The position numbers were made by a program, and so were the translations under genes. The notes under the pieces were generated by a model. It searched no databases. It was not told the origin of the DNA and saw only the letters and a list, made by a program, of their open reading frames with translations. DNA of 63,853 bases from Oculina patagonica (Eukaryota). Positions 1,940 to 45,562 of this stretch are shown here, piece after piece. The DNA lies in contig NC_135768.1 in the NCBI RefSeq assembly GCF_052425735.1, positions 9,858,001-9,921,853 on the forward strand, written 5' to 3'. How positions within the stretch are numbered: the stretch's first letter is position 1; each line of letters starts with the position of its first letter.

Positions 1940-3433
1940 ATGGCGGATGATGATACAAAGAGTACAGGGTTCGTACATAAATCTTATAAGTGCTTTTTAA
2001 AAATATAAGTCGCATGCTTTCAACTGCATTTCATTGTAGCTTTGAAAATCAAAGTTGTCCGTTTAAATTTGCGGTTACCGTATCGACCAAGTTCCTTCTG
2101 AAATGTTTTATTTCTCACTAAGTTGTCGTTGATACTGAATGAAGCCTAAATTGTCGTAGAGGGTAATTTTTGTAATCAAAGATTGCCAACACGCGTTACA
2201 CGTTTTATCCTATTTTAATATTCGCCGGAAAAAATAAACAAAGGTTTATTTACAACTTACAGCACTGAAAACTTAGTATATACACTTGAGGCCTCGAGAT
2301 TAATTTTACTCGCAATGCAGAGGGTACTTTTTTTTCTACAATTCAACGATTCCCAAAACGTATTACATGTTTTACCTTATTTTACTTTTAGCCGGACGAA
2401 AAAATAAACAAAAGTTTATTTACAACTTACAGCACTGAAAACTTAGTTTATACACTTGAGGCCTCAAGATTAAATATATTTTACTTGCAATGCAGTTTAA
2501 ATAATATAAACTGCATGATTGTAAAAATAATTCCACTCACTCACTCAATCCTCTTCGTGCCCTTGGGCACATAAGGCCGTAAAAAATTCCATACCTAATA
2601 AAACAATTGTATTTGTTTTCAGAAATTATGCAATGAAATGGTCAGAAGAACATGATCGCATGCTTTGCACAGAAGTCCTTGTCTTGGAACCATGGAAATT
2701 CCCTAAGCAAAGCAAAGAAAGAGGAGAGGTCTGGGGCGAAGTAGCATTACGTTTAAATGGCACAAACTATCCCAAATTCAAAGTCAGTAAGCGTTCTGTC
2801 AGGGAAAGACTCACTCTTTTGGTCAACAAATACAAAGAAAAGACGAAAAAGGAGGAGCAAGGTTCTGGGATTGAATGTGACGATGAAACCGAATTAGAGA
2901 AGGCATTGCCTGAGATCATCGAAAAAGACCAAGCAGCTGATTTGGAAAGGAAACAAAATTCGAATACTCTTACTAAGAAGAATGAAAGTGACAAGGCCTC
3001 TGCAGAAGAGAGTAGATTAAAGGCCATGGAGCGCCTGGGGCAAACCAAAAAGAGGAATGCTGATGCAAGCTCTGATCAAGTTACTCCACCAAAAAGCAGA
3101 AAAAGCACCACTGAAGCTGCGCAAATTCTGAAAGAAAAGTATGAGAATGAAAAAGAAATCAGGAAGGAAGAAATGGAAATTAAGAAGAAAGAACAAGAAA
3201 ATAGAGCTGCCGAGCAACAGATGCTGATGGATCAGCAGAGACACAGCCAGCAACAATACCAGGATGTATTAAAGGTCATGACTGAACAGCAGGAGACAGG
3301 AACAGCAGATGCAAAATTTCCAAATGCTTTTTTTGCAGCAGCAACAACAGCAGAGCCAGGTACTCATGGGTTTACTGGAAAGAGTCCTGCCCAAGTCCTC
3401 ATAAGAGGAAGGCAAAAGAGCTGTTGTGGTTAA
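1940..3433 (+). pseudogene. Harbinger accessory Myb/SANT-like DNA-binding protein with coiled-coil tail, frameshifted near the 3' end
   Basis: Exon 1940-1968 (MADDDTKSTG) splices in frame (GT..AG) to 2623. ORF 2633-3433 has Trp-spaced KWSEEHD...RGEVWGEVALRLN...SVRERL. The Q-rich tail continues in another frame near 3290 (QQMQNFQMLFLQQQQQQSQVLMGLLERVLPKSS*). Confidence 0.75.
2535..2578 (-). mobile_element. ~45-bp 5'-truncated RTE 3' end inside the Harbinger intron
   Basis: Reverse complement acggccttatgtgcccaagggcacgaagaggattgagtgagtgag matches the RTE tail at ~29329-29371. Flanked by the near-identical duplication gtaaaaataattcca / gtaaaaaattcca. Confidence 0.8.
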
Positions 3434-4205
3434 CATTTTATTTAATGGTCAATTTTTAAAATTAAAATTAAAAAGAGATATAAAGTTGCAGTTTATGAAA
3501 ACCTAGGTGAACCCTTTCACCCCATGGGGTGCCGAGTTAAGAACTGAAAAAAGTTAAATTTAATATTCATGTTTTGTTACAATTTTAAGTGTAACATGTG
3601 ATTTTCATGGCAACCAAATGTTTTCCTTTAGGGTTGACCAAAATTTATATTTTTGTGTTTTATCTTTTAGAAGTTTTGAAGAACATACCAGAAGAGATCG
3701 AACCTTACTCAGTGTTATTGTCTTTATTGTCTATTTTAATGTATTTATTTTCATTTTTCTGGTTAATCAAGGGGGTGGGTAGCCACCCAACCCATCCCCC
3801 TGGATCCACCCCTGAATGATCCCTTCCCTTTTTTTTTCTATTTTTTAAGAGGGGGTGAGGTACTTTCAGTCCACCCCCAGTCTAAAAAAAGGCCAAGGCT
3901 AATAAGGGTTAAAGGACCATTCTTTGTAGAAGGGGGGGGGGGGTTGTTGGGATGTTTTATTTGTTCCTGCAATGTCCCCTTCCCTACAATCTGCATTTTT
4001 TGCCCCATAACATGTATTGTATGTCCAGGAAAATAATGCTGTATCATAAAAAAATATGTTGGGATCAAAAGATATGTTGTTGGGATTTTTTATTTGTTCC
4101 TGTAATGTCCCCTCCCCTACAATCTGCATTTCATGCCCCATTACATTTTTCGTTTGTCCAGAAAAATAAAGCTGTATCATAAAAAAAATATACAGCTATT
4201 TTACT

Positions 4206-13849: not shown

Positions 13850-14650
13850 CATCAGTGTGAGTAAGCTGGGCTTGTTTGATTGCTGATTTCAAAATCTAGA
13901 CAACACGTTCAGCCTGAGCATTAGTGGATGGCTTGCAGCTACTGAAGTATGATGTACAATTTTATTGTTGACACAAAACTTTTCAAATTCTCTCGAGGTG
14001 AACTGGGAACCATTGTCAGAAACAAGAATTTCAGGCAATCCGTGCCTGCTAAATATGTCACGCAATGCAGTGATAGTTGTTCCAGCAGTAATATTTGTCA
14101 TTTTGACCACCTCTGGAAATTTGCTGTATGCATCAACAACAACCGGACCTGAGACCGGTCCTGCAAAGTTCACATGAATGCGAGACCAAGCCCGTGCTGG
14201 AAAACTCCATGGATGGATTTGAGCAGTAGGAGGTGCAGATCTCATAGTTTGACAAGTACTGCATGAAGAAACAGTTCTTTCAATGTGAGCATCAATATTG
14301 GGCCACCATACACATGACCTTGATAGTGCTTTCATTCTGGAAATTCCAGGATGTGTTTCATGAAGTTCATGCAATACTTTCTCTTGAAGGGAAGCTGGTA
14401 CAACAACCCGAGTGCCCTACAACACACAGCCTTGTTGGGTTGTCAGTTCATCTCGTTTATTCATGAAGGCACCAATGTGGGATCTACTTCACTTGGCCAT
14501 CCACTGATGACAAAACTGTACACTCTGGATAAGATGGGGTCAACCTGGGTTTCTCTTTTGATCATCTGGCTGGTCACATTGGTTACAACTTTAGGTCCTA
14601 AGAAGAAGCACTCGATCCACAACACATTACAGGGACTGTGTGAAGGCTAA
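13850..14650 (-). mobile_element. Gypsy/Ty3 LTR retrotransposon pol (integrase) fragment
   Basis: ORF 13889-14374: LHETHPGISRMKAL...WWPNID...CSTC (HHCC zinc domain), WSRIHVNFAGP, VVDAYSKFPEV, ILVSDNGSQF; degraded flanks. Confidence 0.92.
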
Positions 14651-15024
14651 GTTAATTTTATGATATTAAATTTTGTAAAATATTCGCTACGAAACTAAAT
14701 GTTTGCAAAGAAATTAATTCTATAATTCTAAATGGCAAAACCATAACTTCATTGCAGCCAAATGTGTCTTCCGGGCGTTATAATTTAAAGATACAAAAAA
14801 AGATTAACTTTGAAAGCTGTTTCACCGGACAATATTTCAAAAACCCATATGGCAATCCGTTTCAATCTTCGACACTTTTGGCCATCCGTACATTCTTTCG
14901 CATTTGGTGTGTTATTTAAATATTTCTTCATTGTTATAAGAGGTTATTTGATATATTCAAACGAATTTGATGTTCATTTTGTATGCCTAAGTTTGGCTAA
15001 AATCAGTGAAACGGTCCCTTTAAG

Positions 15025-15442
15025 GCCCGGGGGGGGGGGGTAATCAAAAAAGTTTTATACGAGGAGGCTCCGCCCCAAGTTCTAACCCCTTACCCTTTTA
15101 TATACCATTTTTGACAGAAATTGTACCCCTTTCGTATACCTTTAACTGAAAAAAGGTACCCCTTTCATATACCTTAGAGACATGGCGTGGACTTAAAATA
15201 GGACGTTTTCTTGTCATTTTTATGTATCGCTTAAAAAATTAAAATAATACAGCCATAAATTGCGTCTGTTCGAAATATTTTAATTAAAGGCCCTTTTAAA
15301 TAGCCAAATGACAGATTTCCATACCCTTTCATATACCTAAACTCGTGAAATCCCTACCCTTTTATATACCTGAAGCCTGAAAAAGGTACCCCTTTCGGGC
15401 GAAGCTTCCCTGTAAAGGCCATTATAGGGAGTACCCCCCGGG
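15025..15442. mobile_element. MITE with CCCGGGGG...CCCCCCGGG termini
   Basis: Inverted G/C-rich ends and internally repeated aaaggtacccctttc / tacccttttatatacc motifs. Confidence 0.55.
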
Positions 15443-16820
15443 CTTTAAGGGCCTCATTTCCCAACTGGAGTGTACTTTTTTCGACGTTTTTGCTTGTTTA
15501 CAAGCGAAAGTAGGAGAATAGCAGTTATGTTGGGCAAAATTTGGAACATTCTTGTTAACTCTCAAGGGACTTTATTAATTTCTCAAGGGACTGTTTTAAT
15601 TTCTCAAGGGATTACTTTCCGCTGTGGGTGATCACTTGCGATCTCGTGGAAAAAACGTGACTTGTCACATTTACAAACATTATATAACAATTTTAAAAGT
15701 GACATGTCAGCTTTCTTATCTCAACGCACGTGTGTCTGAAAGGCGATCTATAAAAAGCGTCGCACAAACAATGGATTGCGTAACCAACGCTAAAACACGA
15801 ATAAATAATCACTAGCACTTACATCGTTTAAAAATTACAAACGTCAAAAATAAACCATACCAAAAAACTCGCTCTTTTCAAAGATATTATTGAAGTTAAA
15901 ACAAATGCAAGAGATGGGGGCTTCTTTTAGCTTAGGAACGGTTAAAAATTAGGCCAAATTTGGTCGCTACAAGCGCCATTCTATTTCGTCATCAGCCTAG
16001 GTCGTTAGGGACGTGACCTCGCGTTGACAGCAATGTTGCATGAATCGGCTTTACAACATGCGATCGTATCTACGCAGTTCGAGTGGAATTTCAGCTGTTT
16101 CAGTCAAAGACAGCAAAATTCTTTCGTATTTCATCTTCAAATATAATTCGAAAGCATTCACTGTATCTATGGCTTTTGTTTAATCCTTCTTTAGCCCACG
16201 AAGAAGCTGTCTTGATATCCGACCCTCGCAGAGCCTAGACAAAACGCAGCTTGAGTGTATCGATTTGTTTACGCCGCAATTATATGCGCAATGTTTTCTC
16301 CGACAGTAGTCGGAAATATCCGTATTTTTTTCGTGCTTTTTCGTGGAGCAATCGTAACGATACGGCCTTGAACACATTGAACAGCGGTCTACCTATAACA
16401 ATTCAAATATGGCGTCGCAAAAACAAAGCGTCGAACGCACATTTTGCTGTTTCATTTGCTAATTTCGCTGCCGTAATCGACTGCCTCGAAAGGTCCTTGC
16501 AATTTTAAAGTATAGAATTGTCAGATCTCGGTGAAATTTGCACTGTTTATTTGTGTAATGTTGAGGAATATGTGTATAAATACCCGGCAAGGACGAGCCA
16601 TTTTTGACAAAATTATATGGCTGCATTTCCTCCGCGAAGATAGGAAATTGTTAAACTAAACTACAAAGCAACTGTAATGATAAGTTCGAAGAACAATGCA
16701 CAGGATAAACCTTCGACTCATACTTCATGCAAAAACGTCGGTATCTCGAAGAGACTTTGATTATTCCTTATCACTGGTAATGTTTTTTTTATTTGGTTGC
16801 CATCAGATCTTACTGAAATA

Positions 16821-16997
16821 CAGTTGAACCCCCGTAACTCGAACACACTGAAGGGAAACGAAAAACAGATCGAGTTAGCGGGGTTTTCGAGTTAACCGAG
16901 TAAAAACGACTCAAAAGTGGGTCCAAGGAAAAAGGGAGTTAGTTCGAGTTAGCGGGGTTTTCGAGTTATCCGAGTTCGAGTTACCAGGGTGCTACTG
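16821..16997. mobile_element. Tc1/mariner-type MITE, TA TSD
   Basis: TA-CAGT...ACTG-TA with taactcgaac/gttcgagtta subterminal repeats; absent at the paralogous site upstream of gene A (~10500). Confidence 0.8.
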
Positions 16998-17532
16998 TAT
17001 ATACTAAAAATACTAAATTATCCAATTGTGTAAATCAGCATAAAGGACAAGCAATAGTAAAGAAAAAATGAAAAACAAATTAGGCAAGGAACTGGAAAGA
17101 AAATCAGCATTTTTAAAGTTATTAAATGTTTAACGACGTCATCAAAATAAATAAACATAACTCTTTCTCAAACAACTGCGCCTGATCATATATTACATAC
17201 TTAAAAACAAATCAGTACATTATTGAAGAGTAAGGTTATTTTAAGAAACCTTGCGAAAAATGATTTTCAAAGTACTTTGAATTCTACGTGTCGTTTGTCA
17301 GGTTTAAGACCGAAACTAATATTGTTATTAATAATTTGATATTCAACTTGACAAAGCTGTCTCAATATTAGTTCGCCATAACTTTTAGCTTTCACTCAAA
17401 CCTCCGTTATCACACACTTAAGTTTCCCACGGCGAAATAACAATACAACGGCTTTGCTGTGTGACTGCGTCGGTCGGAGGTTCTACTCTGCGAAGTTCGA
17501 TTGAGAATTTTTTTCTTCTCTGTTTGGATATC

Positions 17533-20181
17533 ATGAAGCTTGTTTTTATCATCGCCGTCTTTGTCTTCTTTTTGGAGAATCCATCTGAAGCCAAAGTACG
17601 TAAGATATATATATTTGTTATATCGTTTATATCGTAGCATTGAAATACAGTGGAACCCCGATATAACGATCTTCGATATAACGATATTCCCGATATAACG
17701 ATGAATATGTTATGTCCCGGCAATAGTAAAATGTATGGGACGGAACCCCGATATAACGATTCCTCGATATAACGATATAATTTTACTGCCCCCTTGGCAT
17801 ATCGTTATATCGGGGTTCCACTGTAGTATAGGTAAATCGGAATTTATGCTACAATACCTTTAATTCTAGATAAGTTAGTTCTCCCGCTTGCAAATCTCCA
17901 ATTTGTAGGAAACACGAGTCAGTATTTTGGGTTTAAAAATTACCGACTTCGAACAGATGGATTAGTAAATATTTCAACTTTACGATAAAATTAGCATCGC
18001 AATATCTAGGGTTAACAACGTCACAGACGCAGGTGCATATTGAAGAAATTGACCATTTTTTCGTTTTAATCTTTATCATCCATTAGTATCTTCCTTTGTT
18101 TTTTTTTTTCATTTTAATTTGTTTTCTTTTCTTTCCTAAAAAACTATTATTTTGCGGTTTCCTTCGTCAAAAAAAAAACACGTGTACCTCTTTTACGGTA
18201 ATGACAGTTTTGAAGTTGAAATAATACTCAAACACCCTGCGGCTAATTTCAGTTTTATAGGAATAAAAATAAAAACATTGTCAATAAATTCACTTCCCAA
18301 GAAGAGTTAAATGGGAAAATTGAATGAATTGACGAGCGAAAGTCCACTACTCGCGCGCGCGATTTCACTAAAGCGTAAAGTTTATTGCTAGTCCATTTGT
18401 ACAAAAACAATTTAGAAATCATCATTTGAAGAAAAATGAGTTAAAATTCTACTAAAACAATTAGATTATTCGCTCTCAATTTCTATGAGGTGAAAGTTGA
18501 TAAGGCCGAAGGATGAATCAACTATAACCCCATAGAAATCTCGAGCCTATAATCTAATTGTAAATTATTATTAATTTTTATTTATTACAATACTAACATC
18601 ACTTACAACAGTTACAATACTAACGTTACTTTCAATACTGGCGTTACTTACAATATTAACGTTATTTAAAATACTAACTTTACTATCAACACTAACTTGC
18701 CTCACAATACGAACATTTCTTACAGTACTAACATTACCTACAATAATTTATCTAAATAGCTTACAGTTTCAATTATATTAATATTACTTAATGATTTGAA
18801 ATACAACCAAAAATATAAATCTTTGTATATCGAAATATTTTACAAGTCATCTAAAGTATAATTGAAAAATTTGTTGAGCAGTGCAAAAAAATAAATGAAA
18901 TGTGCAAGATGAGTATAGGAAAAAGAACGATAGCTTCGACGTCTTGGGTGTTGGGAAATATGTGAAGGGTTAGTGCGATTTTTTCCTCTAAGTTAAATAA
19001 ATTAATTTGAGCTTAAGATGGGGAATAAGGGATCCTATTTCTTCAGATTAGATTTGGGTTTATGGGCTTCAATATTAAATTGTGATTACAGAATTACAAG
19101 AAATTGTTTATTATGATAATACCAATAACGCGTGAACGAGTCTTATAAAGAACAGTACATGTACTTTTAAGCATCCCCAGATGTAGTTTGGTCACACGAA
19201 TGACAAAAAAATTGTTTTTACTCTTTAGTATAAGAAAAAAGGATATAGCGAGTTTCGCCCACAACAAGAATGGTTTTGCCCAGAAGTAAAACGTCTAGAA
19301 TCTAACTCAAAAAACGTCAACCTAAACGTGCGTAACAGAATAAAGGTTTTGAAAAAAAAGTGACTTGACCTGAGACCATGAAATGTTGAAACGAACAAGA
19401 TGATCACTTTCACTGTTGAAACGAACAAGTTATCAATTTCACGAACAATGGAGCACAAAAATACTGCAGAGACATTGAACGTTTATCGAAAAAGCATAGC
19501 TATGATTTGGTTTTTTTTATCTGCAGCACTTATTTTCTCGAGAAGGTCGCGTTTGTTTTGAGTTGGAGCAAATTAAACGCTGTTGAAAACACTTGCGCGT
19601 GGAACACACCATCGTTGCAAATCTTTTGTACACGAAAGATAAGTTTCGCATGCCAAATTACGAATATGAATTCGCGAATACTAAAAAAAGGCATCGAGAG
19701 TTTTTAAAGATTGTATTTCTGACATAGGTAATGGCAACATATATTTTGAAATGAGATTAAAACAAGATTGTAACTCGTTATGGGCGAAACCCGCGGCTTT
19801 CAGAAAAAAACTTTTTCTCTCTTTTCAGGTACCAGATTTGCCTGATGATTTGGTTCATTTACAAACCTACCTTCAGAATCAGGACGACTCGTTAAAAACC
19901 ATCCAAGGCCAACTTCACGCCACTAATCAAAATTTGGCCAAGTTATATGCCGACGTTACAGCCCAGGGAGTTATGTTGCAGCAATTGCATCAAAGCCTCA
20001 CTGTCACTCACACACAGCTAACTTATACTTTTGGTAAGTTTGTTGTATATTTGAATTCTTGTACCTGGACGAAGAGCTCTCGTCCTTGATACTAAAAAAT
20101 TGACCTTTTTACCTAAATGTACAAATACGTTTTCTTTGCACAGGCCTCATTACAAAGTGTTTAAAATACCATGAAGAATGA
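17533..20181 (+). CDS. Secreted coiled-coil protein, paralog B (101 aa, 3 exons)
   Basis: Exons 17533-17595, 19829-20033, 20144-20181. MKLVFIIAVFVFFLENPSEAK VPDLPDDLVHLQTYLQNQDDSLKTIQGQLHATNQNLAKLYADVTAQGVMLQQLHQSLTVTHTQLTYTF GLITKCLKYHEE*. GT..AG introns with the same phases as A. Confidence 0.85.
17648..17823. mobile_element. Tc1/mariner-type MITE (CAGTGGAACCCCGATATAACGA TIR), TA TSD
   Basis: Perfect TIRs, TA on both sides, empty site in paralog A intron 1; same family as 48852-49012. Confidence 0.88.
18570..19110 (-). mobile_element. Degenerate AT-rich insertion (probable LINE 3' tail) with ~21-bp tandem tacaatactaac repeats
   Basis: Absent from paralog A intron 1; tandem repeats at about 18585-18750. 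Confidence 0.45.
19241..19801. mobile_element. Non-autonomous DNA element (MULE-like) in paralog B intron 1
   Basis: Imperfect TIRs gcgagtttcgcccacaac / gttatgggcgaaacccgc, AGAAAAAA duplicated on both sides, empty site in paralog A. Confidence 0.6.
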
Positions 20182-31003: not shown

Positions 31004-34000
31004 ATGGAAAAGTTCGTACTTCAGGCTTTGTTCCTTGTCTGGATGCTAGCAGTAACCGTAAGTTGATTTAACTGTTTTTTTTTAATACTTATTCAGTATC
31101 ATCTTAAGAGACTGATTTTTTCTTAATCCTTGGCATTATAAGACCTTTGACAACAACTTTCCTCCATCGCGCCACTAAAGCGCATCTACCAAGGATATAT
31201 CGTGCCGCTAAAATACAAGCATACTGCCTTGGATAAGCGCTGAAGTATTTTCTGTCCTTTTCACTGTTAACTGTGTTTATGCTCCTTTTGTATCTGGTTT
31301 TTTATTTCATAAGCGGTGCTAAATACCCTTTTCGTCACTGACCCTGCTGTCAGACAAAACAATGCATGCTTTGATATCCTTTGAGTTTTCTTCTTTCACA
31401 GAAAAAATATCAATGATTCAGAATTGTTCTTTGATAAGCGCTGAATTTTTTTTGTCCTTTTCACTGTTTTCTGTGTCTATGCTCCTATTGCATCTGGTAT
31501 TTATTTCACAAGCGGTGCTAAAGATATCTTTTCGTCTCTGACCCTGGTGTCATTTGCACTCAGACAAAACATGCAATGCGAACTTTGATATCCTTTGCGT
31601 TTTCTGCTTTCACAGAATAAAATAATTATAAGAATGAATTGCTGCCGTTTTTCCGGCATACCCAATGTGTATACCAGTAAACGTAACAACAGAAATCCTT
31701 TTCTCCTAGGTTGTTTCATCTCCCACAGAGAAAAGACAAGATAGAGGTATATAAAACTAGAGAAAATAATACATGGGCAGTTTTAGTCGCCATCAAGCTA
31801 TGTCACGAAGTACAAAATATACTTGAAATCACATGTCACCTTAATTGCTGCTTGAAACCATGCAAAACGCAAACGAAAACCGGATACCGTAGAATTCCGG
31901 TTATAAGCTCTGGGCCTTATACAACTTCGTAAGGGGTTTTGGGTGGGCTTATAAGCGAAGGGGCTTATATCTGGGAGGGCTTATAAGCGAAATAATAATA
32001 AAAAAAACGTTTCAAAAAGATCTACGGGAGTGTTGATCAAAAACGTTTTTAAGTTAAAAACGCATAATAACACAACATTTAGCCCTGTTCAGTACTGTCA
32101 TCCAGCAGAGGGGGGCTTATATCCGGAGGGGCTTATATTCGGATGTATTTTTTTGTTTCCAGGTTGATGGGCCTATAACCGGGGGGCTTATAAGTTGGGG
32201 GGGGGGGGGGTGCTTATAACCAGAATAATACTGTATTAGAAAATTTTACCTTTCAGAAGGGGCATATTAGAAAGAGATGCTTAAAGAGGGAATAAACATA
32301 AATGTAACTGTTGAGTCCGTTTACATGGGTTTATCGGAAATATCTCTTTCACATTTCAAGCAATCTAAGAACTCTCTCCTCATCTCATAAATCTATGTTT
32401 TTTTTTTTTGGGGGGGGGGGGTGGTTTGTAAATTTTGGGGGATGTTTTGGAGGATTTTTTTTTTTCAAAGGATTTGTATAATTTGGAGAAATGAGAAATA
32501 TTGAAGATTTAATATAGTTTTAAAATCATAACTGGGGTGTTCTTGCGTGGGGTCAACCGTCTGGCGGTGTTCCAAAAATGGTTTTCTTTCTTCTACCCCT
32601 TCTTTAAACTTCTTAAAGCTCTATTGAAAGCTTTAACGGTAACAAAAAATCTTCGAACAATACCTTGAGTGGAAATCTATCTGATTTATGATATAATAAA
32701 AACGTCTGTCTGTTCAGTTTCAGTCGAAATCATGATTAAAACATCGGAAATAATCGGAAGCGCTGAATCACTGATTCTGCCCTTCATCAATGTTACAGCA
32801 TGGAATAGCTTTTTTGTGAACAACAACCACGAACTATCGGTAAATCTTTCTTTATTAATAAAAAACACACTGGAAGACGATTTCCTGTCGACCATGTTTG
32901 ACAGGCATGACATAATGGCTGGTATCCAATGGCCGCTTAACCAATTAAAACTCTGGAAAGTTTCCAAATTTAAAGATAAACAAAGTGCTTGCAAAATGAC
33001 AAAGGTCACCATGAATTTGAAGCAAAAACATCACCTTTTTTGCAAATTAAATCTCTGGAAATTCTCCAGCTTTAAAGATACACATCTGGACATTGTGCTT
33101 GCAAAGTAAGAAAGGTCACCGTGAATTTGAAGCAAATAACATCACCTTTTTTGCAAATCAGTTGTACTCATGCCTCAAAATAGCACTATAATGAGGTCAT
33201 ACTGCCTGATGTTCTAACTATAGTATTATGGTCCACATTATATTACGCTGGCATAAAAACTCTTCATGTTTACAGTTCAAAACTGATTAAGTCCTTTTCA
33301 TAATAACGACTGCTTGCGATTTATTTTTTTGATGATTGAACGTTTTTATAGCGTGTGCTTTCTTTTGTATTAAAACAGCATCTGGATGCCCAAGTGACCA
33401 GTTGTCCAAATTCTCCATCAAATATGCTAAAGAACTTCAAAAGCGTGTTCTAAATATGATTCACTTTGCAAGGCCCGATGACAGATCTTGGTTAACAGAA
33501 CAACGGCACTTTAAAAGAAGGCTTCTTATGGTAAGTGAGATTTAGCGCCGGTGACCAGGGAATTGAGAGCAGAAATGTAAGAGGCTTCCTCTCTTACGCA
33601 CTCTTGATAGAGCCACTTTAGACATTTAACCTCGGCTAAATCACAGTAGAAAGGATGTACAGAGTAGAAGGTAGAGATAATTAGAACGCAGAGAAAAACG
33701 AAAAGAAAAAGGCAAGAAAAAAAATCGGTACAGCTCAGCAAAAAAGTCCAAAGATGGCTTATGCGCATACTCCAAAGTAAAATATTGTACCTTTTTACAA
33801 TCTTGTGGAAGGAATCTTCATCCAAATTCTACTGTAGTGTGAAAAAGCGCTTTTCTACTAATTAATTTGTACCACCAAAAAAATCAATTGAACGGTTAAA
33901 AAGGGTATTTATTGAGTAAATTCAATTATTCGTTTGTTTTTACAATAAGGGGAATTTGTTATGAGTGGTTGCAAGTGGTCGTTCTAATCCTCTTCACAAG

Positions 34001-37000
34001 CAATGATAGTGTAGCAATGATATACAAGAAACGATTTCACCTTTAATAGTCATAGGCGTACGGGCACCTTCGGACCTGGGGGGGGGGGGGGGGGGGGTTG
34101 GGCGGACACCTTATTGCCCAAAAAAAAAATAGACTTTCTCAAAGTCCGCAAGCTATGGCAAATGTGATTGCAATTAAATCAAACTGAGGGATCTCGCAAA
34201 ATTTGCGCGAAAAATTGACCATGATTATAGCAATTTGCGAGAGAAAACGAAAACAAATGAATGAGAAATTTGGACTTTTGAACCACAAAATTCAGTATAT
34301 TTTCAATACGTTTTTTCTATAGATGTAATTCGTTTCGAGCGTGATGTTAAGATTTGTCGGCTTATTTTCTATTCTTTCTCTAGGCTTGTTGGCCGAATTC
34401 TAAGCATTTTGCCCGAAAAATTTCGGCACTGGGAGGGCTGTTAATAGTACACTCAACAGAATTACTACATTCTGATTGGACGAGAGCAGTACAAAATGAT
34501 CCCAAATTGTACTCTCTAGGAGTTTATTTAACTTCTGTTTTCGAAGTTGACCATAAAACCTCCGAAGACTTTTAAAATGATCCAATGACTTTGAAGATTT
34601 CCGAGGTCGACTCGAAGATTCCCGAAGACTTACAAACTTGAAGATATTTAATTAAGTTTGTGAATTTAGAATTCGTGATTAATAAGTACTCGTGATGTTT
34701 TGAAAGTTCTCAATCTTGACGGTCGTGCGATTTCCTATACTAATTTCTCATTTGGCGGTTATTCATTTAGTCGTAAAAGTACTGTAAGGAGAGACCTAAA
34801 GGGAAAAATGTAATTATAACATAGCAAGCAGAGCCGCGCAATCAAATTCAGTATACGTAAGCGTGCTCAAAATCCCGATGGAGCACGCTGATGACGTAAT
34901 CGACGAGCGAAAATCTCACTGAGTAAAGCTCATACGCTGCGGGTGCTTTGCTAAAGCGATGACATATTATTTTCGGAATATGAAAAGTGAATCCTTTCAA
35001 TATTTTCCCAAGGAAACGAGCTACAAGGTAAGCTGTTATGAGACGGAGAGCGAAAGAGAAAATAAATTCGATTTTGCCGTCAAAGTTGTTTGTGTGCTTT
35101 CCTTCATTCTAATAACAACAACTAACGTGCGAGTCTCGAAGGACGAAAATCATTTTTTTCACTGCCCTAACGTGGAAGAATGGGCCAACCATGAATGACA
35201 ACAGCTCGATGGCACTAAAAACTAGCTGCCTGACGAAAGTTTTCGCGTTTTAAGCATTACACCAAAGCGTCTACGGCTCTGTTGTGATTTTGCCGCTCGG
35301 GAAAAATTAACTTCATCGGGCGCTTCATTTAACTACCGTTTTCATTTACATCAATAACAAAAAAAATCGGTCCACAAAAATACTTAAAAGTAAGCATGGA
35401 ACCGAATTCTTTGACCCTTTTACCCTTAGAATCTGTTCTGCTGTTCGAGGTTGTTTTGTTTTAATTTTCTTTCACGGGGGAGTAAACATTTAAATTTTAA
35501 TTCAGCGAAAACTTGCCTCAGAATCAACAGCAGTATTTACTGTTTTTGTCATTTTTTTTATTCGCTCTGCCACCGTATAAACTTAGTCAATTTATCAGCC
35601 ATTTGACACAAACTGCTCCAATCGTGTAAACTTGTACATGTGTAATTTATTGCTCGACCGCTAAGTTTATGTTCTCACACTGCACACAATAAACACAGTT
35701 TTCTTCCCGCGGCCGGTTTTGATGCACAATTCCACCGGCAATGTTATAAAACAATTGGTTCATGCTTTTAGCTGTGCTCCATCGAGTTTTAGAATATAGC
35801 CGCTGTATACGCGCGATGGAATTCTAGCGGGCTTTAGCTGAAAACTATAGAAGCCCGGTACCCCGGATGTGCGAATTTCGCTGAACGACTTCGTCGACTT
35901 CGCATCTATTCTCTTGTTTTGTTGTTTAAATGATGCTTTAAAGCAGCGAGTTTTTATCAAAAACGTTTAACCTGCTTAAATGGAAGTAAGACAGTGCAAA
36001 AGGAAGCGACAGATGAAGAAAGAATCGTTGAAATTTGTTTTTTTTCTTTGGAGTTGTATACGCCACTATTTTGCCGTGAATTGCCCGAAATTGATTGGAA
36101 ATTATTTAGCAAAACAAGCCGAACTCTAGAAACGCTTTGAGGTAAGAAACCTTTCTTAGCCACAATCTGAAGACAGAACACTCCACTTTTGTTTCTTTTA
36201 AATCGAGTAAGAGGCGAATTTGAAAAACTTGCTGCGAAACGAACGCATGAAAATTTTTCATTTGAATGAAATTGAAGTAGGCTTAACCAAACTTGAATGC
36301 GTAAATATTTCAACTAGATTTGTTGGCTTTGTGAGAATCTTTTGGTAGTTGGAGAAAGGACTATATAAATAGGAAATATGAATGGAATGGTATCTTGGTT
36401 TATTTATAAAGAAGCTGCCAAAGAAAATAATAAACTAAACTTTCACTTTTAACAATGCTGCGTGCGTTTGTAAAATGCCGTGAGCGGCCGCGAGTCTTGT
36501 AAGTTCTGTGCTCTTTTTAATGCTGTATTCTAAACCCACTAGAAGATAGTTTTCCTATGTCCTATAAGAAAATACTGCACTTTTGAGGTCTAGAAAAGCA
36601 GCTAAATGCCCTCGCCTGACGGCTCGGGCATCCACTAGCAGCTGTTATAGACCTCAAGCGTGCATTATTTTCTTATAGAATATGGAAAACCATCTTCTAG
36701 TAGGTAAATGGAGCACTTGGGAAGTTTGGAGAGCACTCAAGAAGCTAGAGTTGCCCTCGGCTATCGCCTCGGGCAACTCTTCCGCTTCTTTCGTGCTCTC
36801 CAAACTTCCCGCGTGCTCCATTTAACAAATAGATTCCATTTTGCAGTGCGTCTGTTTAATTATAGATCACAGATGACGTCAAAATGTGGTATTATTATTA
36901 TATAATAACACAAGACTTCGGCACACTTCAGTTTGAGCAATGCCGCCGTAAAGATGAGCTAAGTTGTTTTGATTTAACCATTAAGTTTTCGTTAACACGA

Positions 37001-40000
37001 AGCACTGCTAATCCGATTGAATAAACAGAAAAATGGTCAATTGAAAGTCAATGAAAAAACTAACCTTTATTCCGATTTGGAAAGTTGTTCAAATCTGTAA
37101 ACATAACCGAAGCGTTCAACCACAATTCGTTTGTTTCCCGTGGCGTTGTCCGAATTGCACAACATCGGTCAAACTTACTTACAGATTTCGAATAATTTCT
37201 CGAATAATAATATACATACAAAAATTTCTGCATGCTCATTGGCTGAGAGCACGTCAATTAATCCCAAACAGTGCAGAAAGTTGAAATTGAGTGCAGAAAG
37301 TTGAACCAATTGTTTAAAGGACATTTGGGCACATTTTGACTGGGAATTCGAAAATGGGATTTGGCTTACTGGGGCTGGCAATCGCAAATAAAAACAGTGG
37401 AAACTGGGAATGGAATTTGGGAAAATTTTTGTCAAAACAATTGCTGGGAAATGGGATTTGGGCAAAATTTGGGCTGAGAAATAGAATTTTTATACCCTGC
37501 TTCAGGACCCTCTGTTTTCTTGCAGTGGGGATTCCAACAAATGGACAGAAACAAAAATGGCCTGGTTGACTACAACGAAGCTGCAAGGGGGAGGTGGAGC
37601 CTGCGTGGTCCAAGAGTGTGCCAGTTAGCTTTCCTTCGAAAGTGTGATGAGGATCAGAGTAGGAGTGTCTCGCTGAAGGAATGGCAAAATTGCTTCAAAA
37701 TCACTTCAGGTGACAATGTACAAATGGGAAAATTAAAATCGACTTGTTCCTGGCAATATCGATTCACTTTCAGGCAGTAACTGATATTATTTGGATATTC
37801 GAGCATGAACTGATGAAACGCTGATTTTTACCGCTAAAGGACTGTTACAATGTACCTTAAATATCACACAAATACATGTACTAATCGGAGGATCGATCAA
37901 GATATACGAAAACTGACAGCTAGTAACCCTCCTCTCCTCCTTGCAGAAGAAAATACATTTTAAGAGTCTCAGAAAAGGCTCAAAGATCCAAAAACACTAT
38001 GTCTAAGGTTTATCGGTCTGTTACTAAAAATGTCTTGTCTTGTGGTACATGGTAAGGTATTAAGGCGAAGTTCAGGCCTTTTCTAAAAAGTTGGACCTCA
38101 TTGTCCTTCAGATCATGGTGAGATGCATTCACTACCATCTTGTTTTAATCTCCTCATGCTTATGTAATTCAGAGAAGAAAGGTAACTTCTTATTTTGTTT
38201 AAGGAGCAGCTTTTCCTTAAGGCGTTCTGTCTCCTGTGAAACTTCATCCATCAGACTTTCGAAGTATAAATCTCCAATAGTTTTTATTTATTCCACTTTA
38301 ACAGATAAACCTCACTTCACTTACACCTATGGCCATAGCCCTAAGTGGGCATAGGGCCGGACATTCTCCCTCGCCATGCCGCACGGTCCAGAGCAGCCAC
38401 TGCTGCCTCGCTCCTCGAGCCGAAACCCAAGGCCGCTCTTTTTTTTCTCGGCAGTTTTGCGCCAAGTCTCCCTCGGTCTGCCAACAGATAAACCTCAGTG
38501 ACAGATAAACCTAAGATCGGATGAATCTTGATCTTGAAAAGTACTACAGTTCCTAGACAGTTTTACTCACAATAACACTTCTATTCTTTTCAGAATGCAA
38601 TAAAACCTGCCTCCGTGGTCAACTTGACACAGATCTTTGTCAGTGCCAGTGTCCTGATAGTGTTATTCACGGACGGGTAGTGACGACATCTGGAGCCCCA
38701 CTTCAAGACGTCAGCATTTGGTTTGGAATCTCCTCTCGTGCAGAAATGGCAAGGACCAATAAGAGTGGGCACTTTTCAATGATTGACAGGTGTGAAAATT
38801 CGTCTTATACGCTAAGGAAGAACGACTACATTCCTCTTCGACTTGAGGGCGGCATTCAAAGAGACGGCCATCCGCTTTTGATCCGTCTTGAAGATGCAGG
38901 TATACTGAGCTAGCTCTTGTTAACTGAGCAATAACAATTTTTCCCAGCTTTTTGTAATACTTTCGGGGCAAAGAATGTGCATTTTTGTACATTTTGTCAA
39001 TTTGTCAACTAGTGAGGCGGGCAAGGCAAGTGACCTATCAGGCCAGAGCTTATCCCTGCTGTTTCAGTAGCATAAAGCGACTAGGAGTATTTCTACTACA
39101 CCTGGATTAGATGCTAGTCCATTGCAATGTTACCCCCCAGAAGTACCCATTTATAAATCTCGGTAGAGAAAGGAACAATGAGAGTAATGTGCCTTGGCAA
39201 AGAGCGCAACACAGTGACCCGACCAGGACTTGAAGCCTGACCGCTCGATCCGGAGTCTAGATCACTAACCATTAGGCCACTGCACTTCCACATTTTTTGT
39301 ATACCAACATATTTTCATGTATTTCCTTTACAGAGCCAGCTTTTGTCTCCGTTAATCCAAAGAGCAAGACACGCATTGCTGGACAAAGTGCGAATTTCAC
39401 CTGTGAAGCAGAAGTGACCCTACCAATTGAAATAAGCTGGTAAAGCAATTAATCGTTGTTTGCTCCCACATGGACAATTGACGTGAAAGGCAGAAATATT
39501 TAATACTTAAATTCAATTATTTTGTTCTTGTTAAAGGTATCATAATGGAAGGCGTTTAAAGAAGGTTACCATGGGAACGAAATCTAACTTGTTCATCCCG
39601 AACGTAAATGGAGCTCAAGGCTTCTATACTTGCAAGTCCACAAACGATTACGGATCGGAGATTTCGAGTCCTGCCGAGTTGAAGGTCCAAGGTACGATAT
39701 CTTTCTATTATGTAACGTAGAATCGTCTTTTGCACATGCGTTTATTGCAAAATTCTTTATTCTCAAACGAATAGTACCAAAAAGAGGGTATATGCAAAGT
39801 GGGCATAGGGTTTACAAAAACATACATTAAGTAAAATGTTTTTGAAACGTTCTCTGGTTAAAAATGTGTTACCATATAAGCTTTCGGCTGCCAAAAGCTT
39901 ATATTTTAACAATTTTTTAACCAGAGAACGTTTCAAAAACATTTTACTTAATTATGAATCCTGGTTACTCTTCCATTTTCAAAAACATACATATACTCTT

Positions 40001-43000
40001 GTGCAGTACATGTGCACACAGTCAGGTGCCCCTAACGCCTTTAGAATAAAAGTTAAGTAGATGTGCTACACGTTTTACTTAGTACACACAGTCAGGTGCT
40101 CCCTAACTCCTACCGCCTTTAGAAGAATAAGCAATTTATTAATATTAATTTTATTAACCATCAATTTAAGTTTACACCAGAGCACTTAAGGAGTTGAGCG
40201 ATTTATCGGTTTAGTGGGTTAGTGAACGACAGCTCACTAACAAACCATCACAAAGTGCATTTTGCACAAACAAACAAACAAAAAAACAAATAAACACACA
40301 AATAAGAGCAAAAGCAAGCACCCATTCTTTTGGTGGACCCAAGGTTTCACTATGGTAAGGTAAAAGTTGGAATAAATTAAAGAATCCAGACTAGTTCCAA
40401 TACAATGAAAAAACTCTTCTCGTACTCTTTACACAGAGGAAATATTAGATACCTGCAACCGAACACCAAGAAGTCACGTCATAAAACTACCACCAGGATG
40501 TAAGGTAGCAAGCACAGGCGAGGACACCCTGGATATTGGGCAATGTTCTGACGAACCATGCTCCCAGACTTCATCATTATCACACAGTTGTGGAGCGAAA
40601 GAAGATTGCTGTTGCGGTCCAGTGAGCGAGGATCACCAAGAAAGGATTGTCGTAAACTGCGGTGTAAGTTACAATGACATGGTGTTTTATCGGCTCAAAG
40701 GATGCGGGTGCGGCACATGCGCCAAACGAGAAACCGTCATAAAAGGTGAGCTGTTCTAAATAAAAATAATTATGTTATTATTGATTTTTTATGATTGTTC
40801 ACCCAAAAAAGTTTGCGGTCGACCATAGTGGCCCATCAGGCCGTAACCATCTAGCCCCAGTTGTTCAAAAGGAGGATAATGCTAACCACAGGATAAATCA
40901 CTATCCGGTGGATAGTGTAGTATGTTTTGTTAACACTTATCCACTGGATAGTGATTTATCTGGTGGTTAGCGTTATCCGCCCTTGGAACAACTGGGCCCT
41001 GGCCACTGCGACTTCCCATTACTGATTTTAATGACAACTACTGGCATTACTGATATTAATGCCTGTCCACCCATACCTTTTTATTTATATCATAGGGTTG
41101 ACGAACTTCCTTGTAACCCATTTTGACAGCCAAACATTTGAGATCTTAAATAATAAATATTCCAGGTTACTGGAAGTGCATTAATTATAAAAAAGTCGTT
41201 GAAAAAAAAGAGGCTTCTAAACAGAGGAAAGAAGTTGATAGAGTTTCATCATTATGGTATCATTTTCGTTGTTCGAAGGACTGATTACTACTGTCATTGC
41301 GTTATAGGAGAAGTCGTCGGTGGCCCTGACCGAGTCCCAGTCAAGAACGTAAAAGTTATCTTCAGAAAGAAAGTAGTTGATAGGACAAATGAAGAGGGAA
41401 AATTCTCGTTCACTCTTTCTGATGATGTGGACCGTGTGGTTGTCACATTTCATGACCCGACAGATCGATTTTTTAACACTACTCAAACCGTGCCAATTCT
41501 GAAAAGCCAGACTGTGTCCCACATCAACATAGCCCTACCTGAGGAGGACCCGCCAGTGACGTTCGACAGCAGCCAAGACCTGAGAGTGCCACTGGGACAC
41601 GCTGAGGACAATATGGCGGAGCTAGAATTTCCAGCAGATAATCTGCTGCATAAAGATGGGAAGCCGTTCAAAGGTGAGTTTCAAGGCGGCGGTTGCCAAT
41701 TAAAAGGCTTTTCGTTACAAAATCGTGAAAGCCTTGAAAGTCCACGACGAACATTGTATACTGACTGTTTTGAACGAGGTCACTAAGCAAAACTACTGGC
41801 AGTTGATAATGGAATGGAACTCGTCAATAAGAGAAAACTTTCTGTGTGGTTGGGAGCGTGACTTATTGTCCACTTATGCGTTAACGTTGAAAGCCTAAAA
41901 AATTTCTATTACAATCCTTAAATGACATAGTGAATATATAAAAGATCATAAAAGACATAAAATCTGTTTGCTTTTCAAGATTAATTTGCAGGAAAGCAGT
42001 ATTAAAGTCCTGAAATAAGCATGAAAATCATTGTTTCTCCTTAAATCAAGTTGTTGTTTTGTGTATTGCATAAGTGATAATATGGCGACAGAATCTCCTT
42101 GTGGAATTGTTTTTGGACTGAAACAATGAACTCGCTTCATAATGCATACAGTGGACTAACACACAGTGTTCAGCTAACCTTTTAGTCATAATTCTAATGC
42201 AAAAGTTCGGAAAATCGAGAAAGGTATGAGCAAATCAGTTTAAACCCTTTTTCGGAATTAAATTTGTAGTATAGGTTGTCGAAAACAATTGAGCTATTGT
42301 TTTCTTTTAACAAAGAACTGCATGCATAAAAAAGTATAAAAATTGCCAACTTCAGCATCAACACTTGGCTCCTGCTAAGAGTTTTAGATAAAGTCGCAGT
42401 CCTTGCAGTTGCAGTTTACAGCGTTATTAATTGGTTCTGCAAGGTAAAAGACTGAAACGACGAAGGTTCTGGACTCGGCGAGAATTCTGCCGACCCAGGA
42501 AATGTTTACCCTAGCAACTGTTTCGTCGTATTTGCGCACACTCCATATCCAGGCACTGTCATGTAGTTTAGCCCAGGCCCCCAAAAGGCTAACCCCCACC
42601 TGAATCAAACAAACTTTAAAGAATGATATAAGAAGAAAATTGGAGAGTGCGTGTTGATTTGAAGATGTTTTCATTTTACTTTCCAAGGTAAAGCAAAGCT
42701 AAGGGTGAGTTGGAAAGATGCAAGAAACGTCAGTGACTTATTGACTACACCAGGAGACTTCACTACAGTTGACCAATCAGGAGACGTTCAGCCACTGAAA
42801 ACATACGGGATACTTAGAATCAAAGTTCAGGACGAGGATAATGAGCAACTTGACCTTGCAGGAAATATGAAGATTCATCTTGACCCTGATAAGGTAATAA
42901 CTTGAAACCTTTTATAATAAGCAACTTTTAATATTTAGGGAATATCTGGTACTTGCGATGTTCAAAGAAGGAAACATTTAGATAATCCATTATTAAGATC

Positions 43001-45023
43001 CGATAGATGTTGTGTAGTATATTCCCCTTGTATTCTTAAAAAGGTGACTCATGCATAAGGGCTACAGAAATACCTGCAATCAAAACGCAATGCATCATTT
43101 GCAACATTTCGAAATGCTATATAGTCATATTGCAGTACACTGTTTTTTGTAGTCCTTGACTTAACTGTTGAAAAAACAAATTTTCACTAATTTGCATACC
43201 ACAGCTCATACTTCCAGCCCTCTCCTCCATTTCATTGTTGTCCAGCTTGTCGTTTCGTGGGAAAATCGTGGGATGAACTTCAAGCCACATGAAACAACAT
43301 TGAGCAGGGAAAGAGGGTGATGAATTTTTTTTTTTGCGCTTGAAAGTCAGAACATTCACAAAAAGTGCGCGATATGTCTTTGGCTCAAATACCTTCGTCC
43401 AGGATTGAAGCTACGTTTTGAACACATATTTCTGCAACAACTGTAGCAACGCTTCGATGAATTTTACAAAGTTAACATCTAAAAGTATATTGTATGTCAT
43501 TTAGCTAATATAAAAAACGTTTAAAAATGAAATAAAATTTAATTTTCGATTGCCTTCTTTGGCTTTTTTTAAAGAGAAGACTCTGCAAGAGTAACAGAAT
43601 GCAAACGTTCTAAGACTTTATTGTTTGTTGCCTCTAGGGAGGCAAACAGTAGTCACATATAAACTCTTGGGACGGGTGCTCTTTCATTAACATAGTTTTT
43701 GTTCAGGAATGAGTACAATGACTCCAGACTTTCGTTAATTTATATGTTCTTCCTCCTACTGGAGAAATGGCGCCATGGCTGTGGTGGCTGAATGAAAATA
43801 CCGGAAGATGGCGCCAAATGGGAGAAATGAAACCAGTCAATAACTCAAGAACCAAACGCTCATTGGGTGGCAGGAGGTTTTACATCGGTGACATTCAAAC
43901 TGATAAACTATCATACATCAACATCGACATTCTATGGAAGCGCTGTTATGTTCGAGCACAGGCCTACACCATGACGAATAAAGGCATGCAACCTGTCATG
44001 GGGGCTGTAGTGACATTGATTGGCAAAGAGAATACCAATCAGGAACAGTATTATGGATATACCAAGGAAATTACTAATAAAAACGGAATAGCTTGTATTC
44101 CTGCATGGTGCGACTCTAATGTTGTTTTGCAGTCAACCAAGTTGTCCTGTAATGCAGATGGGAGTGAACGTGTCAGTAAGTTAAATCTCGATGATACAAT
44201 TTTGGAGAAGCTTGCTCCTGAATTAGAAGCATCTGTTATAGAAGGGAATGAATCGCGTTCTTTTCAGTTCACGACGAAAGTAACTTCACAGGCAGGGCCT
44301 ATATTCGGTGGTGATGAGATGAACAAGTGTGTTGATCTCAGTGACAGTTTGCTGGCGTTTAGTTTTCGCTTGGACGAGGCTGAAGTCAAACTGAACGAGC
44401 TCGACGACTTTGGTTCCAGGCCACCCGGTCACCCACTGTCATGGTATACGACTGATGCCAGCAAACCAAACCAGGAACCTAAGAAGTGTTTCCTTAAAAT
44501 TAAAACAGAATATCGCTCACAAGATTCAGTTCCTTGGGTATCAGTGCAAAGTTTCACACCCGATCGTCAAACCAGGTACGGATTTTCTTCAAAAGAACAA
44601 TCCCTGACAAAAGAACGACCCACTAACGAATGGTATGTGGATCGGGTGGCTTCTGCTTGTGTTGAATACAGATGCAGCGAAAAAGACAAAGAGACATTCC
44701 TTGTGGTCACTATGCTCACTACCGCCTCCTGTTTTTACGATGTACCAATTACAGCAATTCTCGAGTTTCAGCCAAATTTTACCATTGCGATATCTTCCAG
44801 AAGTGCAGGGTTCTATGCCCCAATTGAGATATCTGACGGTAAACTGGGATTCTATTCAGGCCCTGGAAAGATCGCACAAGAGCGTTGCAAAGCCGGGACA
44901 GTAGACGATGTAGGAGAGGGTGTCAAGAAAATAAATAGCGATGGACATGGATTGCTAGCCTTTGATGCACCTGAATGCCCTTTGTATGAATGGATGGAAT
45001 TCCGTAACAGTGGCCCAAATTGA
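31004..45023 (+). CDS. CILP: CILP-like (cartilage intermediate layer protein-like) secreted ECM protein with an N-terminal SPARC-type EF-hand domain, ~1050 aa, 11 exons
   Basis: Phase-compatible GT..AG exons: 31004-31057, 31710-31746, 33379-33530, 37526-37709, 38594-38899, 39334-39439, 39537-39691, 40437-40745, 41308-41673, 42688-42893, ~43728-45023. Order: signal peptide; EF-hand pair; CNKTC...CQCQC plus carboxypeptidase-regulatory-like domain; Ig domain (TCEA...WYHNG...GFYTC); Cys-rich module (CNRTP...KLPPGC...CCCG...CGCGTC); then motifs matching vertebrate CILP (MAELEFP, PLKTYG, WWLNENTGRW, RTKR, RCYVRAQAY). The symbol denotes homology, not proven orthology. Confidence 0.88.
31228..31625. 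repeat. ~200-bp diverged tandem duplication in CILP-like intron 1
   Basis: gataagcgctgaa...tgtccttttcactgtt...ctttgatatccttt...ctttcacagaa occurs twice (~31232 and ~31433). Confidence 0.7.
31885..32235. mobile_element. Tc1/mariner-type MITE
   Basis: taccgtagaattccggttataagc ... gcttataaccagaataatactgta termini; internal gggcttata repeats. Confidence 0.65.
38315..38482 (-). mobile_element. 5'-truncated RTE-type LINE 3' fragment in a CILP-like intron
   Basis: Exact 15-bp TSD AACAGATAAACCTCA (38300-38314, 38483-38497); minus strand reads GRPRETWRKTAE...DRAAWR, with an aagtg-type tail. Confidence 0.82.
39026..39289 (-). mobile_element. tRNA-derived SINE
   Basis: Minus-strand head with A-box tggcctaatgg and B-box-like ggcttcaagtcc, followed by a non-tRNA body. 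Confidence 0.7.
40854..40998. mobile_element. Palindromic MITE
   Basis: gccccagttgttcaaaagg ... ccttggaacaactgggcc TIRs with internal ggataa/ttatcc repeats. Confidence 0.7.
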
Positions 45024-45562
45024 GATTGTCGGAAAAGTCACGAAACGCGCCAAAGACGAGCTGCGAGATCAATATTTTGAAACATGTTTTGAAAGATTTA
45101 ATACCTCATTGTAATAGGTTTCTTTTAAATACCTTGATAAGACAAATAAGTTAGTGAGGTAATAATATTGAAGGATTAGAAACCAATATAATTTTTTCCT
45201 AGTTGCTTTACCTCTGTTCCAGTAATGTCCTGGTTTCAGAACAATTACATGGAAATGAGTTTTACTTAACGTTCAAAGTCATATCCGTAAGAAAGGTTGT
45301 TTGCCAGGACTCAGAAATGGTTTGTTGATAGTGCCTGACTGCGCTATAAACTGAAGAAAATGGGGTAACGTTACGATTCCAGTTTGTTTTTAAATGTTCA
45401 ATAAAGTACTTTAAATGAAGTATCTTTTGTTCTGTTGTGAAATGGAAATATCTTTGAATCATGCGGGGGCGGGGGAGGAATAATTTTCTGTAGTTTAGAC
45501 TAAATAATAAATAGATTTTGGAAAGCCTAAAAACGGAGGTTATCAGTTAGTTGGTAAGGTGG

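Follow-up and report, generated by a model that had tools for sequence, protein, structure and literature searches.

A CILP-like gene of the stony coral Oculina patagonica with a SPARC-type calcium-binding domain at its N-terminus

Described cartilage intermediate layer proteins (CILPs) begin with WxxW and TSP1 modules. SPARC-type extracellular calcium-binding (EC) domains, on the other hand, come in all described families known to us together with a follistatin-like domain. In vertebrate CILPs, TSP1-mediated binding of TGF-beta has been described, as has a furin site in CILP2 (PMC13604700). The present study concerns a gene that combines parts of both systems. It is located in a stretch of 63,853 nucleotides of the calcifying coral Oculina patagonica (NCBI RefSeq assembly GCF_052425735.1, contig NC_135768.1, positions 9,858,001 to 9,921,853 of the forward strand), which is called the window in the following and to which all positions refer unless another locus is named. 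The window is AT-rich and was placed at 9.858-9.922 Mb of contig C11 of a 529-Mb assembly.

The gene encodes a CILP-like protein in which an EC domain occupies the N-terminus, an architecture denoted here as EC-CILP. We consider it, with a probability of about 80%, an intact, expressed gene from a subfamily of secreted, CILP-like matrix proteins of scleractinian corals with this domain at the N-terminus. The reading draws on what was observed of the gene, namely how it is built and spliced, that it is conserved, and that it evolves under purifying selection. Joining of the open frames between GT/AG sites in the region 30800-45100 yielded an 11-exon gene on the + strand, 31004-45023, encoding 1056 amino acids (aa). 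All splice sites of this model are GT/AG, and the reading frame is maintained throughout. The hand-built model is 100% identical over its full length to P0107, i.e., RefSeq XP_078344733.1, annotated as "cartilage intermediate layer protein 1-like" of Oculina patagonica. A preliminary description of the locus, made from the DNA letters alone, had given the peptides, the exon numbering and the phase-1 junction correctly, but its end coordinate, 38899, is the end of exon 5 only, and the gene extends to 45023. The features of the gene are as follows.

31004..31057, + strand: exon 1, aa 1-18; includes the start codon and encodes a hydrophobic signal peptide; model as in XP_078344733.1
31710..31746, + strand: exon 2, mini-exon of 37 nt, aa 19-30, phase 1 end; AG/GT sites; residues as in P0107
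33379..33530, + strand: exon 3, N-terminal half of the EC domain, with Cys34 and helix A; aligned with the start of the SPARC EC domain
37526..37709, + strand: exon 4, both EF-hands; contains Cys113, Cys121 and Cys137; phase 1 end; PF10591 and EF-hand_1 matches
37544..37579, + strand: EF-hand loop 1, aa 88-99; canonical 12-residue loop
37646..37681, + strand: EF-hand loop 2, aa 122-133; flanked by Cys121 and Cys137, as in SPARC
38594..38899, + strand: exon 5, Cys-rich linker and transthyretin-like (CarboxypepD_reg) domain; the CILP core begins here
39334..39439, + strand: exon 6, N-terminal half of the Ig (I-set) domain, by Pfam
39537..39691, + strand: exon 7, C-terminal half of the Ig domain, by Pfam
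40437..40745, + strand: exon 8, CILP_5th domain, PF23708, E 3.7e-13
41308..41673, + strand: exon 9, CILP domain PF23591, E 8e-8
42688..42893, + strand: exon 10, conserved core segment, no Pfam model; aligns with vertebrate CILP and the orthologous loci
43728..45023, + strand: exon 11, CILP_8th and CILP_C domains; stop codon TGA at 45021-45023
43848..43859, + strand: putative furin-type site R-T-K-R, aa 666-669; invariant in six relatives

The EC domain is a two-exon module of phase 1-1, and exon 4 joins exon 5 in phase 1. By sequence, cysteine pattern and fold, this N-terminal module is a SPARC-type EC domain, as the preliminary description had proposed for the EF-hand pair. Exon 4 alone matches the Pfam family SPARC_Ca_bdg (PF10591) with an E-value of 8.7e-9 and 36.1 bits against a cut-off of 22, and also matches EF-hand_1 at 29.5 bits. 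The PF10591 scores were 34.3-36.1 bits for the full protein and the exons, against the gathering score of 22, and 34-41 bits across this gene and its relatives, and in one relative, P0103, the match spans profile positions 2-113 of 113. These matches, and those to the CILP domains described below, are far beyond chance. The best sequence matches among solved structures were SPARC (1sra, 3.8e-6) and hevin, and the alignment to SPARC takes in helix A, both EF-hands and all four cysteines with the spacing found in SPARC. These cysteines (C34, C113, C121 and C137) are invariant among the relatives and align with those of SPARC, which suggests that they are disulfide-bonded; the Cys-to-Cys spacing around EF-hand loop 2 is that of EF-hand 2 of SPARC. 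In six full-length relatives, both loops have conserved, canonical residues at the ligand positions 1, 3, 5 and 12, with Asp1, Gly6, Val8 and Glu12 being invariant in loop 1 and Asp1, Ser9 and Glu12 in loop 2. In the most divergent EC-bearing homologue (L005:5815-6030), position 12 of loop 1 is Ala, where the usual residue is Glu, and loop 2 is canonical; loop 1 of this homologue may have lost Ca2+ binding.

The fold was predicted with AlphaFold2 (AF2). A model of the EC domain alone, based on a 16-row alignment, reached a pLDDT of 86.9, whereas a model of aa 19-250 (pLDDT 53, EC part below 50) was discarded as poor. In the EC model, helix A, the part encoded by exon 3, spans model residues 9-30 and packs on the EF-hand pair. 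A Foldseek search with this model placed SPARC EC structures on top with TM scores of 0.65-0.69. With VIA-align, the top four matches were all SPARC (Z 10.7-10.9), and 109 of 118 residues were aligned to 1sra at Z 10.9. Generic EF-hand pairs scored Z 7-8 and covered only the C-terminal 60-70 residues, and the reading of the module as a generic EF-hand pair was rejected on account of this difference. A look-up in the ESM Atlas with aa 1-335 gave no usable match.

Compared with the EC domains of SPARC/BM-40 (1sra, 1bmo, 1nub and 2v53) and of the related proteins hevin, SMOC, testican and FSTL1, the coral domain shares PF10591, the four-cysteine spacing, and helix A with the EF-hand pair, but it differs in several respects. 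In the SPARC family, a follistatin-like/Kazal domain precedes the EC domain, whereas the coral protein has no Pfam match to such a domain and its EC domain begins approximately 12 residues past the signal peptide. The coral domain is also ~45 residues shorter (~105 vs. ~150 aa) and lacks the helix B/C region. Loop 1 has the canonical 12 residues, whereas that of SPARC contains a one-residue insertion. Furthermore, the residues with which SPARC contacts collagen are mostly changed, as discussed below.

From exon 5 onwards, the protein is a CILP. With the full protein, the Pfam scores were 44.5 bits for CILP_5th (PF23708), 37.6 for CILP (PF23591) and 29.4 for CILP_C (PF23599) against a cut-off of 27; CILP_8th (PF23730) was borderline on exon 11 (26.8 bits vs. 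cut-off 27), with a precomputed match in close relatives. The order along the protein is thus signal peptide, EC domain, Cys-rich linker with five cysteines, transthyretin-like domain, Ig I-set domain, CILP_5th, CILP, the borderline CILP_8th and CILP_C. The protein is colinear with the vertebrate CILP P0038, aa 164-1043 corresponding to residues 261-1161 with 25% identity (E 9e-75). With vertebrate CILP1 and CILP2, it shares the set of CarboxypepD_reg, Ig, CILP_5th, CILP, CILP_8th and CILP_C domains as well as a basic furin-type site at the same position, the RTKR motif being aligned opposite the basic sequence R-R-G-R-R of P0038. The N-termini differ: P0038 begins with Mucin2_WxxW and TSP1, as had been stated for vertebrate CILPs, whereas the coral gene has the EC exons and neither of these modules. 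No Pfam match to WxxW or TSP1 was found in the protein, and a tblastn search of the locus including its introns gave no TSP1 or WxxW match better than E 0.01, by which a hidden exon of this kind was rejected. TSP1-mediated TGF-beta binding as found in vertebrate CILPs would consequently have no counterpart in EC-CILP. The TSP1-type CILP-likes of invertebrates (P0040, P0048, P0056) and the remote coral paralogs share the Cys-rich linker, the transthyretin-like and Ig domains and the CILP core, but the invertebrate proteins have at the N-terminus either TSP1 or, in P0027 and P0049, a Ser-rich, apparently membrane-anchored stalk. The EC module occupies the position of WxxW and TSP1 in vertebrate CILPs and that of TSP1 in many invertebrate CILP-likes. 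P0049 and P0027 are cnidarian-like CILP relatives whose stalk is rich in Ser and Thr and to which the paralogs on contig C9 of O. patagonica are 59-65% similar; in P0049, a hydrophobic stretch resembling a membrane anchor is found in place of the signal peptide.

The EC exons and the CILP core share one transcript. Logan contigs from four runs, belonging to three studies and carrying two organism labels, were mapped on positions 33370-39369. The GT..AG joints 33530->37526 and 37709->38594, of which the latter had been proposed as the decisive junction, were present in contigs of all four runs. One contig of 825 nt spans exons 3, 4 and 5 and continues past both ends, and the X7 contig reaches 105 nt 5' of exon 3, which would fit exon 2, exon 1 and a short untranslated region. 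A contig of organism A that differs from the locus by one mismatch (99% identity) crosses the joint between exons 4 and 5. Some contigs at 90-95% likeness may derive from a paralog that is 89% identical. In the non-repetitive part of intron 4 (37770-38169), the depth was zero; this lack of depth, together with the spliced joints, points to RNA as the origin of the contigs. Moreover, for P0103, which is 59% identical to the present protein, two Logan contigs of 3.8-4.0 kb contain an uninterrupted open reading frame (ORF) of 1073 codons with PF10591 and the CILP domains. These contigs represent a spliced full-length mRNA of the same build.

The introns and the upstream flank contain repetitive material. 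The repeats that fill intron 3 (34170-37400) attracted contigs of each of the four runs to a very high depth. Between 35745-35788 and 36707-36734, numerous non-canonical "joints" were seen, a pattern that dispersed copies of transposons would produce and that is not attributed to the CILP-like locus. Long poly-G runs are present in introns 2 and 3 (32195-32215, 32410-32422 and 34078-34100). Reads look cut at 34069-34108, and these runs may be trouble spots of homopolymer assembly or sequencing. Directly upstream of the gene, at 27703-29375 on the + strand, retrotransposon ORFs resembling reverse transcriptase are found. In GenBank, the locus is represented by KAL9958312.1 (1421 aa), a model to which such reverse-transcriptase ORFs (28136-29369) were wrongly joined, whereas the RefSeq model is free of them.

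The architecture is not confined to this locus. In the O. patagonica genome, EC exons 3 and 4 were found in five paralogs, in each case 5' of the CILP core and in the same orientation; two of these genes are located on C11, ~110 kb apart, and three are clustered on C13. About ten remoter CILP-like paralogs are found besides, and a gene on C9 has the N-terminal order TSP1, transthyretin-like, Ig. Full-length proteins with precomputed matches to PF10591 and the CILP domains are present in Orbicella faveolata (XP_020605847/48/52) and Desmophyllum pertusum (KAJ7374296/97). Orthologous loci with EC exons were also found in ENA assemblies, with exon-11 identities of 71% (L001), 57% (L008), 48% (L009) and 36% (L005), and a tree of 61 exon-11 sequences contained many lineage-specific duplications. 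The dN/dS ratio of the EC part (0.21-0.28) is the same as that of the other parts, which indicates that it evolves under purifying selection like the remainder of the protein. The hidden Markov model of the helix-A exon gave no match in the remote loci L005, L009, L015 and L016, where only the EF-hand exon is documented. Among the long representatives recovered by an exon 11 search of a 50% library, PF10591 was absent from all 19, but this search yielded mostly single-exon ORF fragments and was uninformative on the spread of the architecture. A profile search with six full-length proteins found only one further EC-bearing protein and reached no complex-clade coral, anemone or octocoral; it was word-limited and so says nothing of absence in those groups. 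The preliminary description had implied that the locus was unique, and this did not hold, since the architecture occurs widely across the gene sets of scleractinians, where it is automatically annotated as "CILP1-like". It had also foreseen that the architecture might be both widespread and described; only the former was found, as the literature searched contained no paper coupling SPARC-type EF-hands with CILP and none citing the accessions of the gene. Thus, EC-CILP is a variant that is visible in databases yet undescribed in that literature, and not a one-off.

Several relatives showed peculiarities of their own. A D. pertusum protein of 725 aa, P0110 (KAJ7374298.1), is annotated as "CUB and sushi domain-containing protein 3" and combines PF10591 with sushi domains. 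It matches the N-terminus of EC-CILP, from the EC to the transthyretin-like domain, at 62%, and its accession is the next after KAJ7374296/97, on the same 4.18-Mb contig. Probably, it is a chimeric model of a third tandem copy. In L002 and L003 (P0082, P0002, P0004), the large last exon contains an internal duplication confined to one lineage, with a region like aa 636-842 followed by a second copy from aa 696 on, in ORFs of 520-620 aa. In L009, a second CILP-like copy (14506-19667) follows the first in tandem at a distance of ~3 kb.

A distant paralog on C2 (L015; G000:C2:32497556-32500927), the sixth in this genome with an EC exon, bears on the relation between the two types of N-terminus. 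It contains an EF-hand exon (557-749) with a PF10591 score of 31 bits and the same 0->1 phases, and 3' of this exon, on the same strand (1766-3928), two TSP1 matches followed by transthyretin-like, Ig and CILP_5th matches. With splicing as predicted, the EC domain and TSP1 can probably coexist in one CILP-like gene. The proposal that the EC domain stands in place of the usual N-terminal modules therefore applies to the present gene but is too simple for the family, given that this paralog apparently has both. Since, in addition, very divergent homologues (35-48% identity) retain the EC exon, EC-CILP may be old. Tentatively, and as an unlikely rather than a favored scenario, the ancestral cnidarian CILP could have been EC-TSP1-CILP, with the EC domain or TSP1 being lost later in different lineages. 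Under this scenario, it would be the first SPARC-type EC domain to function in the absence of a follistatin-like domain, serving a matrix protein for Ca2+-dependent docking.

What the protein does can be proposed from its domains. EC-CILP would be secreted into the extracellular matrix, i.e., mesoglea or basement membrane. At extracellular calcium levels, both EF-hands would be permanently loaded with Ca2+, and the EC domain would thus be a structural or interaction module and not a sensor. The precursor may be cut at the conserved RTKR motif into an N-terminal half, from the EC to the CILP domain, and a C-terminal half, as in vertebrate CILP. In the absence of TSP1, the protein would probably not bind TGF-beta in the manner of vertebrate CILPs, and its most likely role would be in matrix organization and remodeling. 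Some considerations weigh against this picture of an expressed, secreted matrix protein of a coral subfamily. Secretion, Ca2+ binding, furin cleavage and the matrix role are all deduced from the sequence; the RNA nature of the mapped Logan contigs is a guess; the taxonomic breadth, beyond three robust-clade corals, rests on contigs without species assignment; and the coral papers naming "CILP" leave the type of paralog unstated.

An artefact is conceivable, in which the EF-hand exons are part of another gene or transcript, having been fused to the CILP core only in the gene model. The introns of 4 kb and 0.9 kb that separate these exons from each other and from the core are filled with repeats, and the GenBank model at this very locus is itself chimeric with the upstream retroelement. 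However, the spliced joints in the four runs, the single contig over exons 3-5 and the full-length mRNA contig of P0103 speak against it, as do the repetition of the exon order in five paralogs and at least four other genomes and the equal dN/dS across the parts. The separate-transcript explanation was rejected by the spliced contigs, unless these are mis-assemblies, and is extremely improbable. Another possibility concerns function. The EC domain could bind collagen in a Ca2+-dependent manner, as in SPARC, and dock the CILP core on fibrillar collagen. Its fold matches that of the SPARC EC domain, including the SPARC-collagen complex (2v53) and the high-affinity form from which helix C is deleted (1nub), and the coral domain is naturally devoid of the helix B/C region. 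SPARC contacts collagen through R149, N156, L242, M245 and E246. These residues map to K45, R53, L107, P110 and R111 of the coral protein, so that only the Leu is retained, next to a conservative Arg-to-Lys exchange (one or two of five contacts), although this mapping is limited by the helix-A section of the alignment, which is weak (4 bits). Collagen binding as suggested in the preliminary description is therefore not borne out by the contact residues, and we regard it as unlikely.

The same description had also put the protein forward as a candidate component of the skeletal organic matrix, a role in which its EC domain would serve, at the calcifying front, to bind Ca2+ or mineral. It is true that the host is a calcifying coral, that all carriers of the architecture among the named species are stony corals, and that the protein contains a predicted extracellular Ca2+-binding module. 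The mineral binders typically present in skeletal matrices, however, are acidic and of low affinity, whereas an EF-hand takes up a single ion at high affinity. Also, the words "CILP", "cartilage", "SPARC" and "EF-hand" are absent from the texts and small supplements of the skeletal-proteome studies of O. patagonica/S. pistillata and D. pertusum, which counts weakly against such a role. Mentions of CILP in corals concern disease responses and remodeling of the gastrodermal matrix: a coral "CILP" is included in a white-plague response list (PMC9524840), an increased abundance of "CILP" was listed in stony coral tissue loss disease, and in Stylophora after heat stress, "CILP" was found in matrix-remodeling gastrodermal cells. 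A part in biomineralization is thus very unlikely, and the finding of EC-CILP has at present no bearing on skeleton formation.

EC-CILP has consequences for both parent families. The existence of a conserved, selected and expressed EC-CILP family in stony corals implies that EC and CILP modules have been shuffled more freely than textbook architectures suggest. It also provides a precise label for the "CILP1-like" genes that recur in lists from coral disease, bleaching-recovery and proteome studies, and the EC domain of 110 residues offers a direct handle on the Ca2+-dependent behavior of a coral matrix protein.

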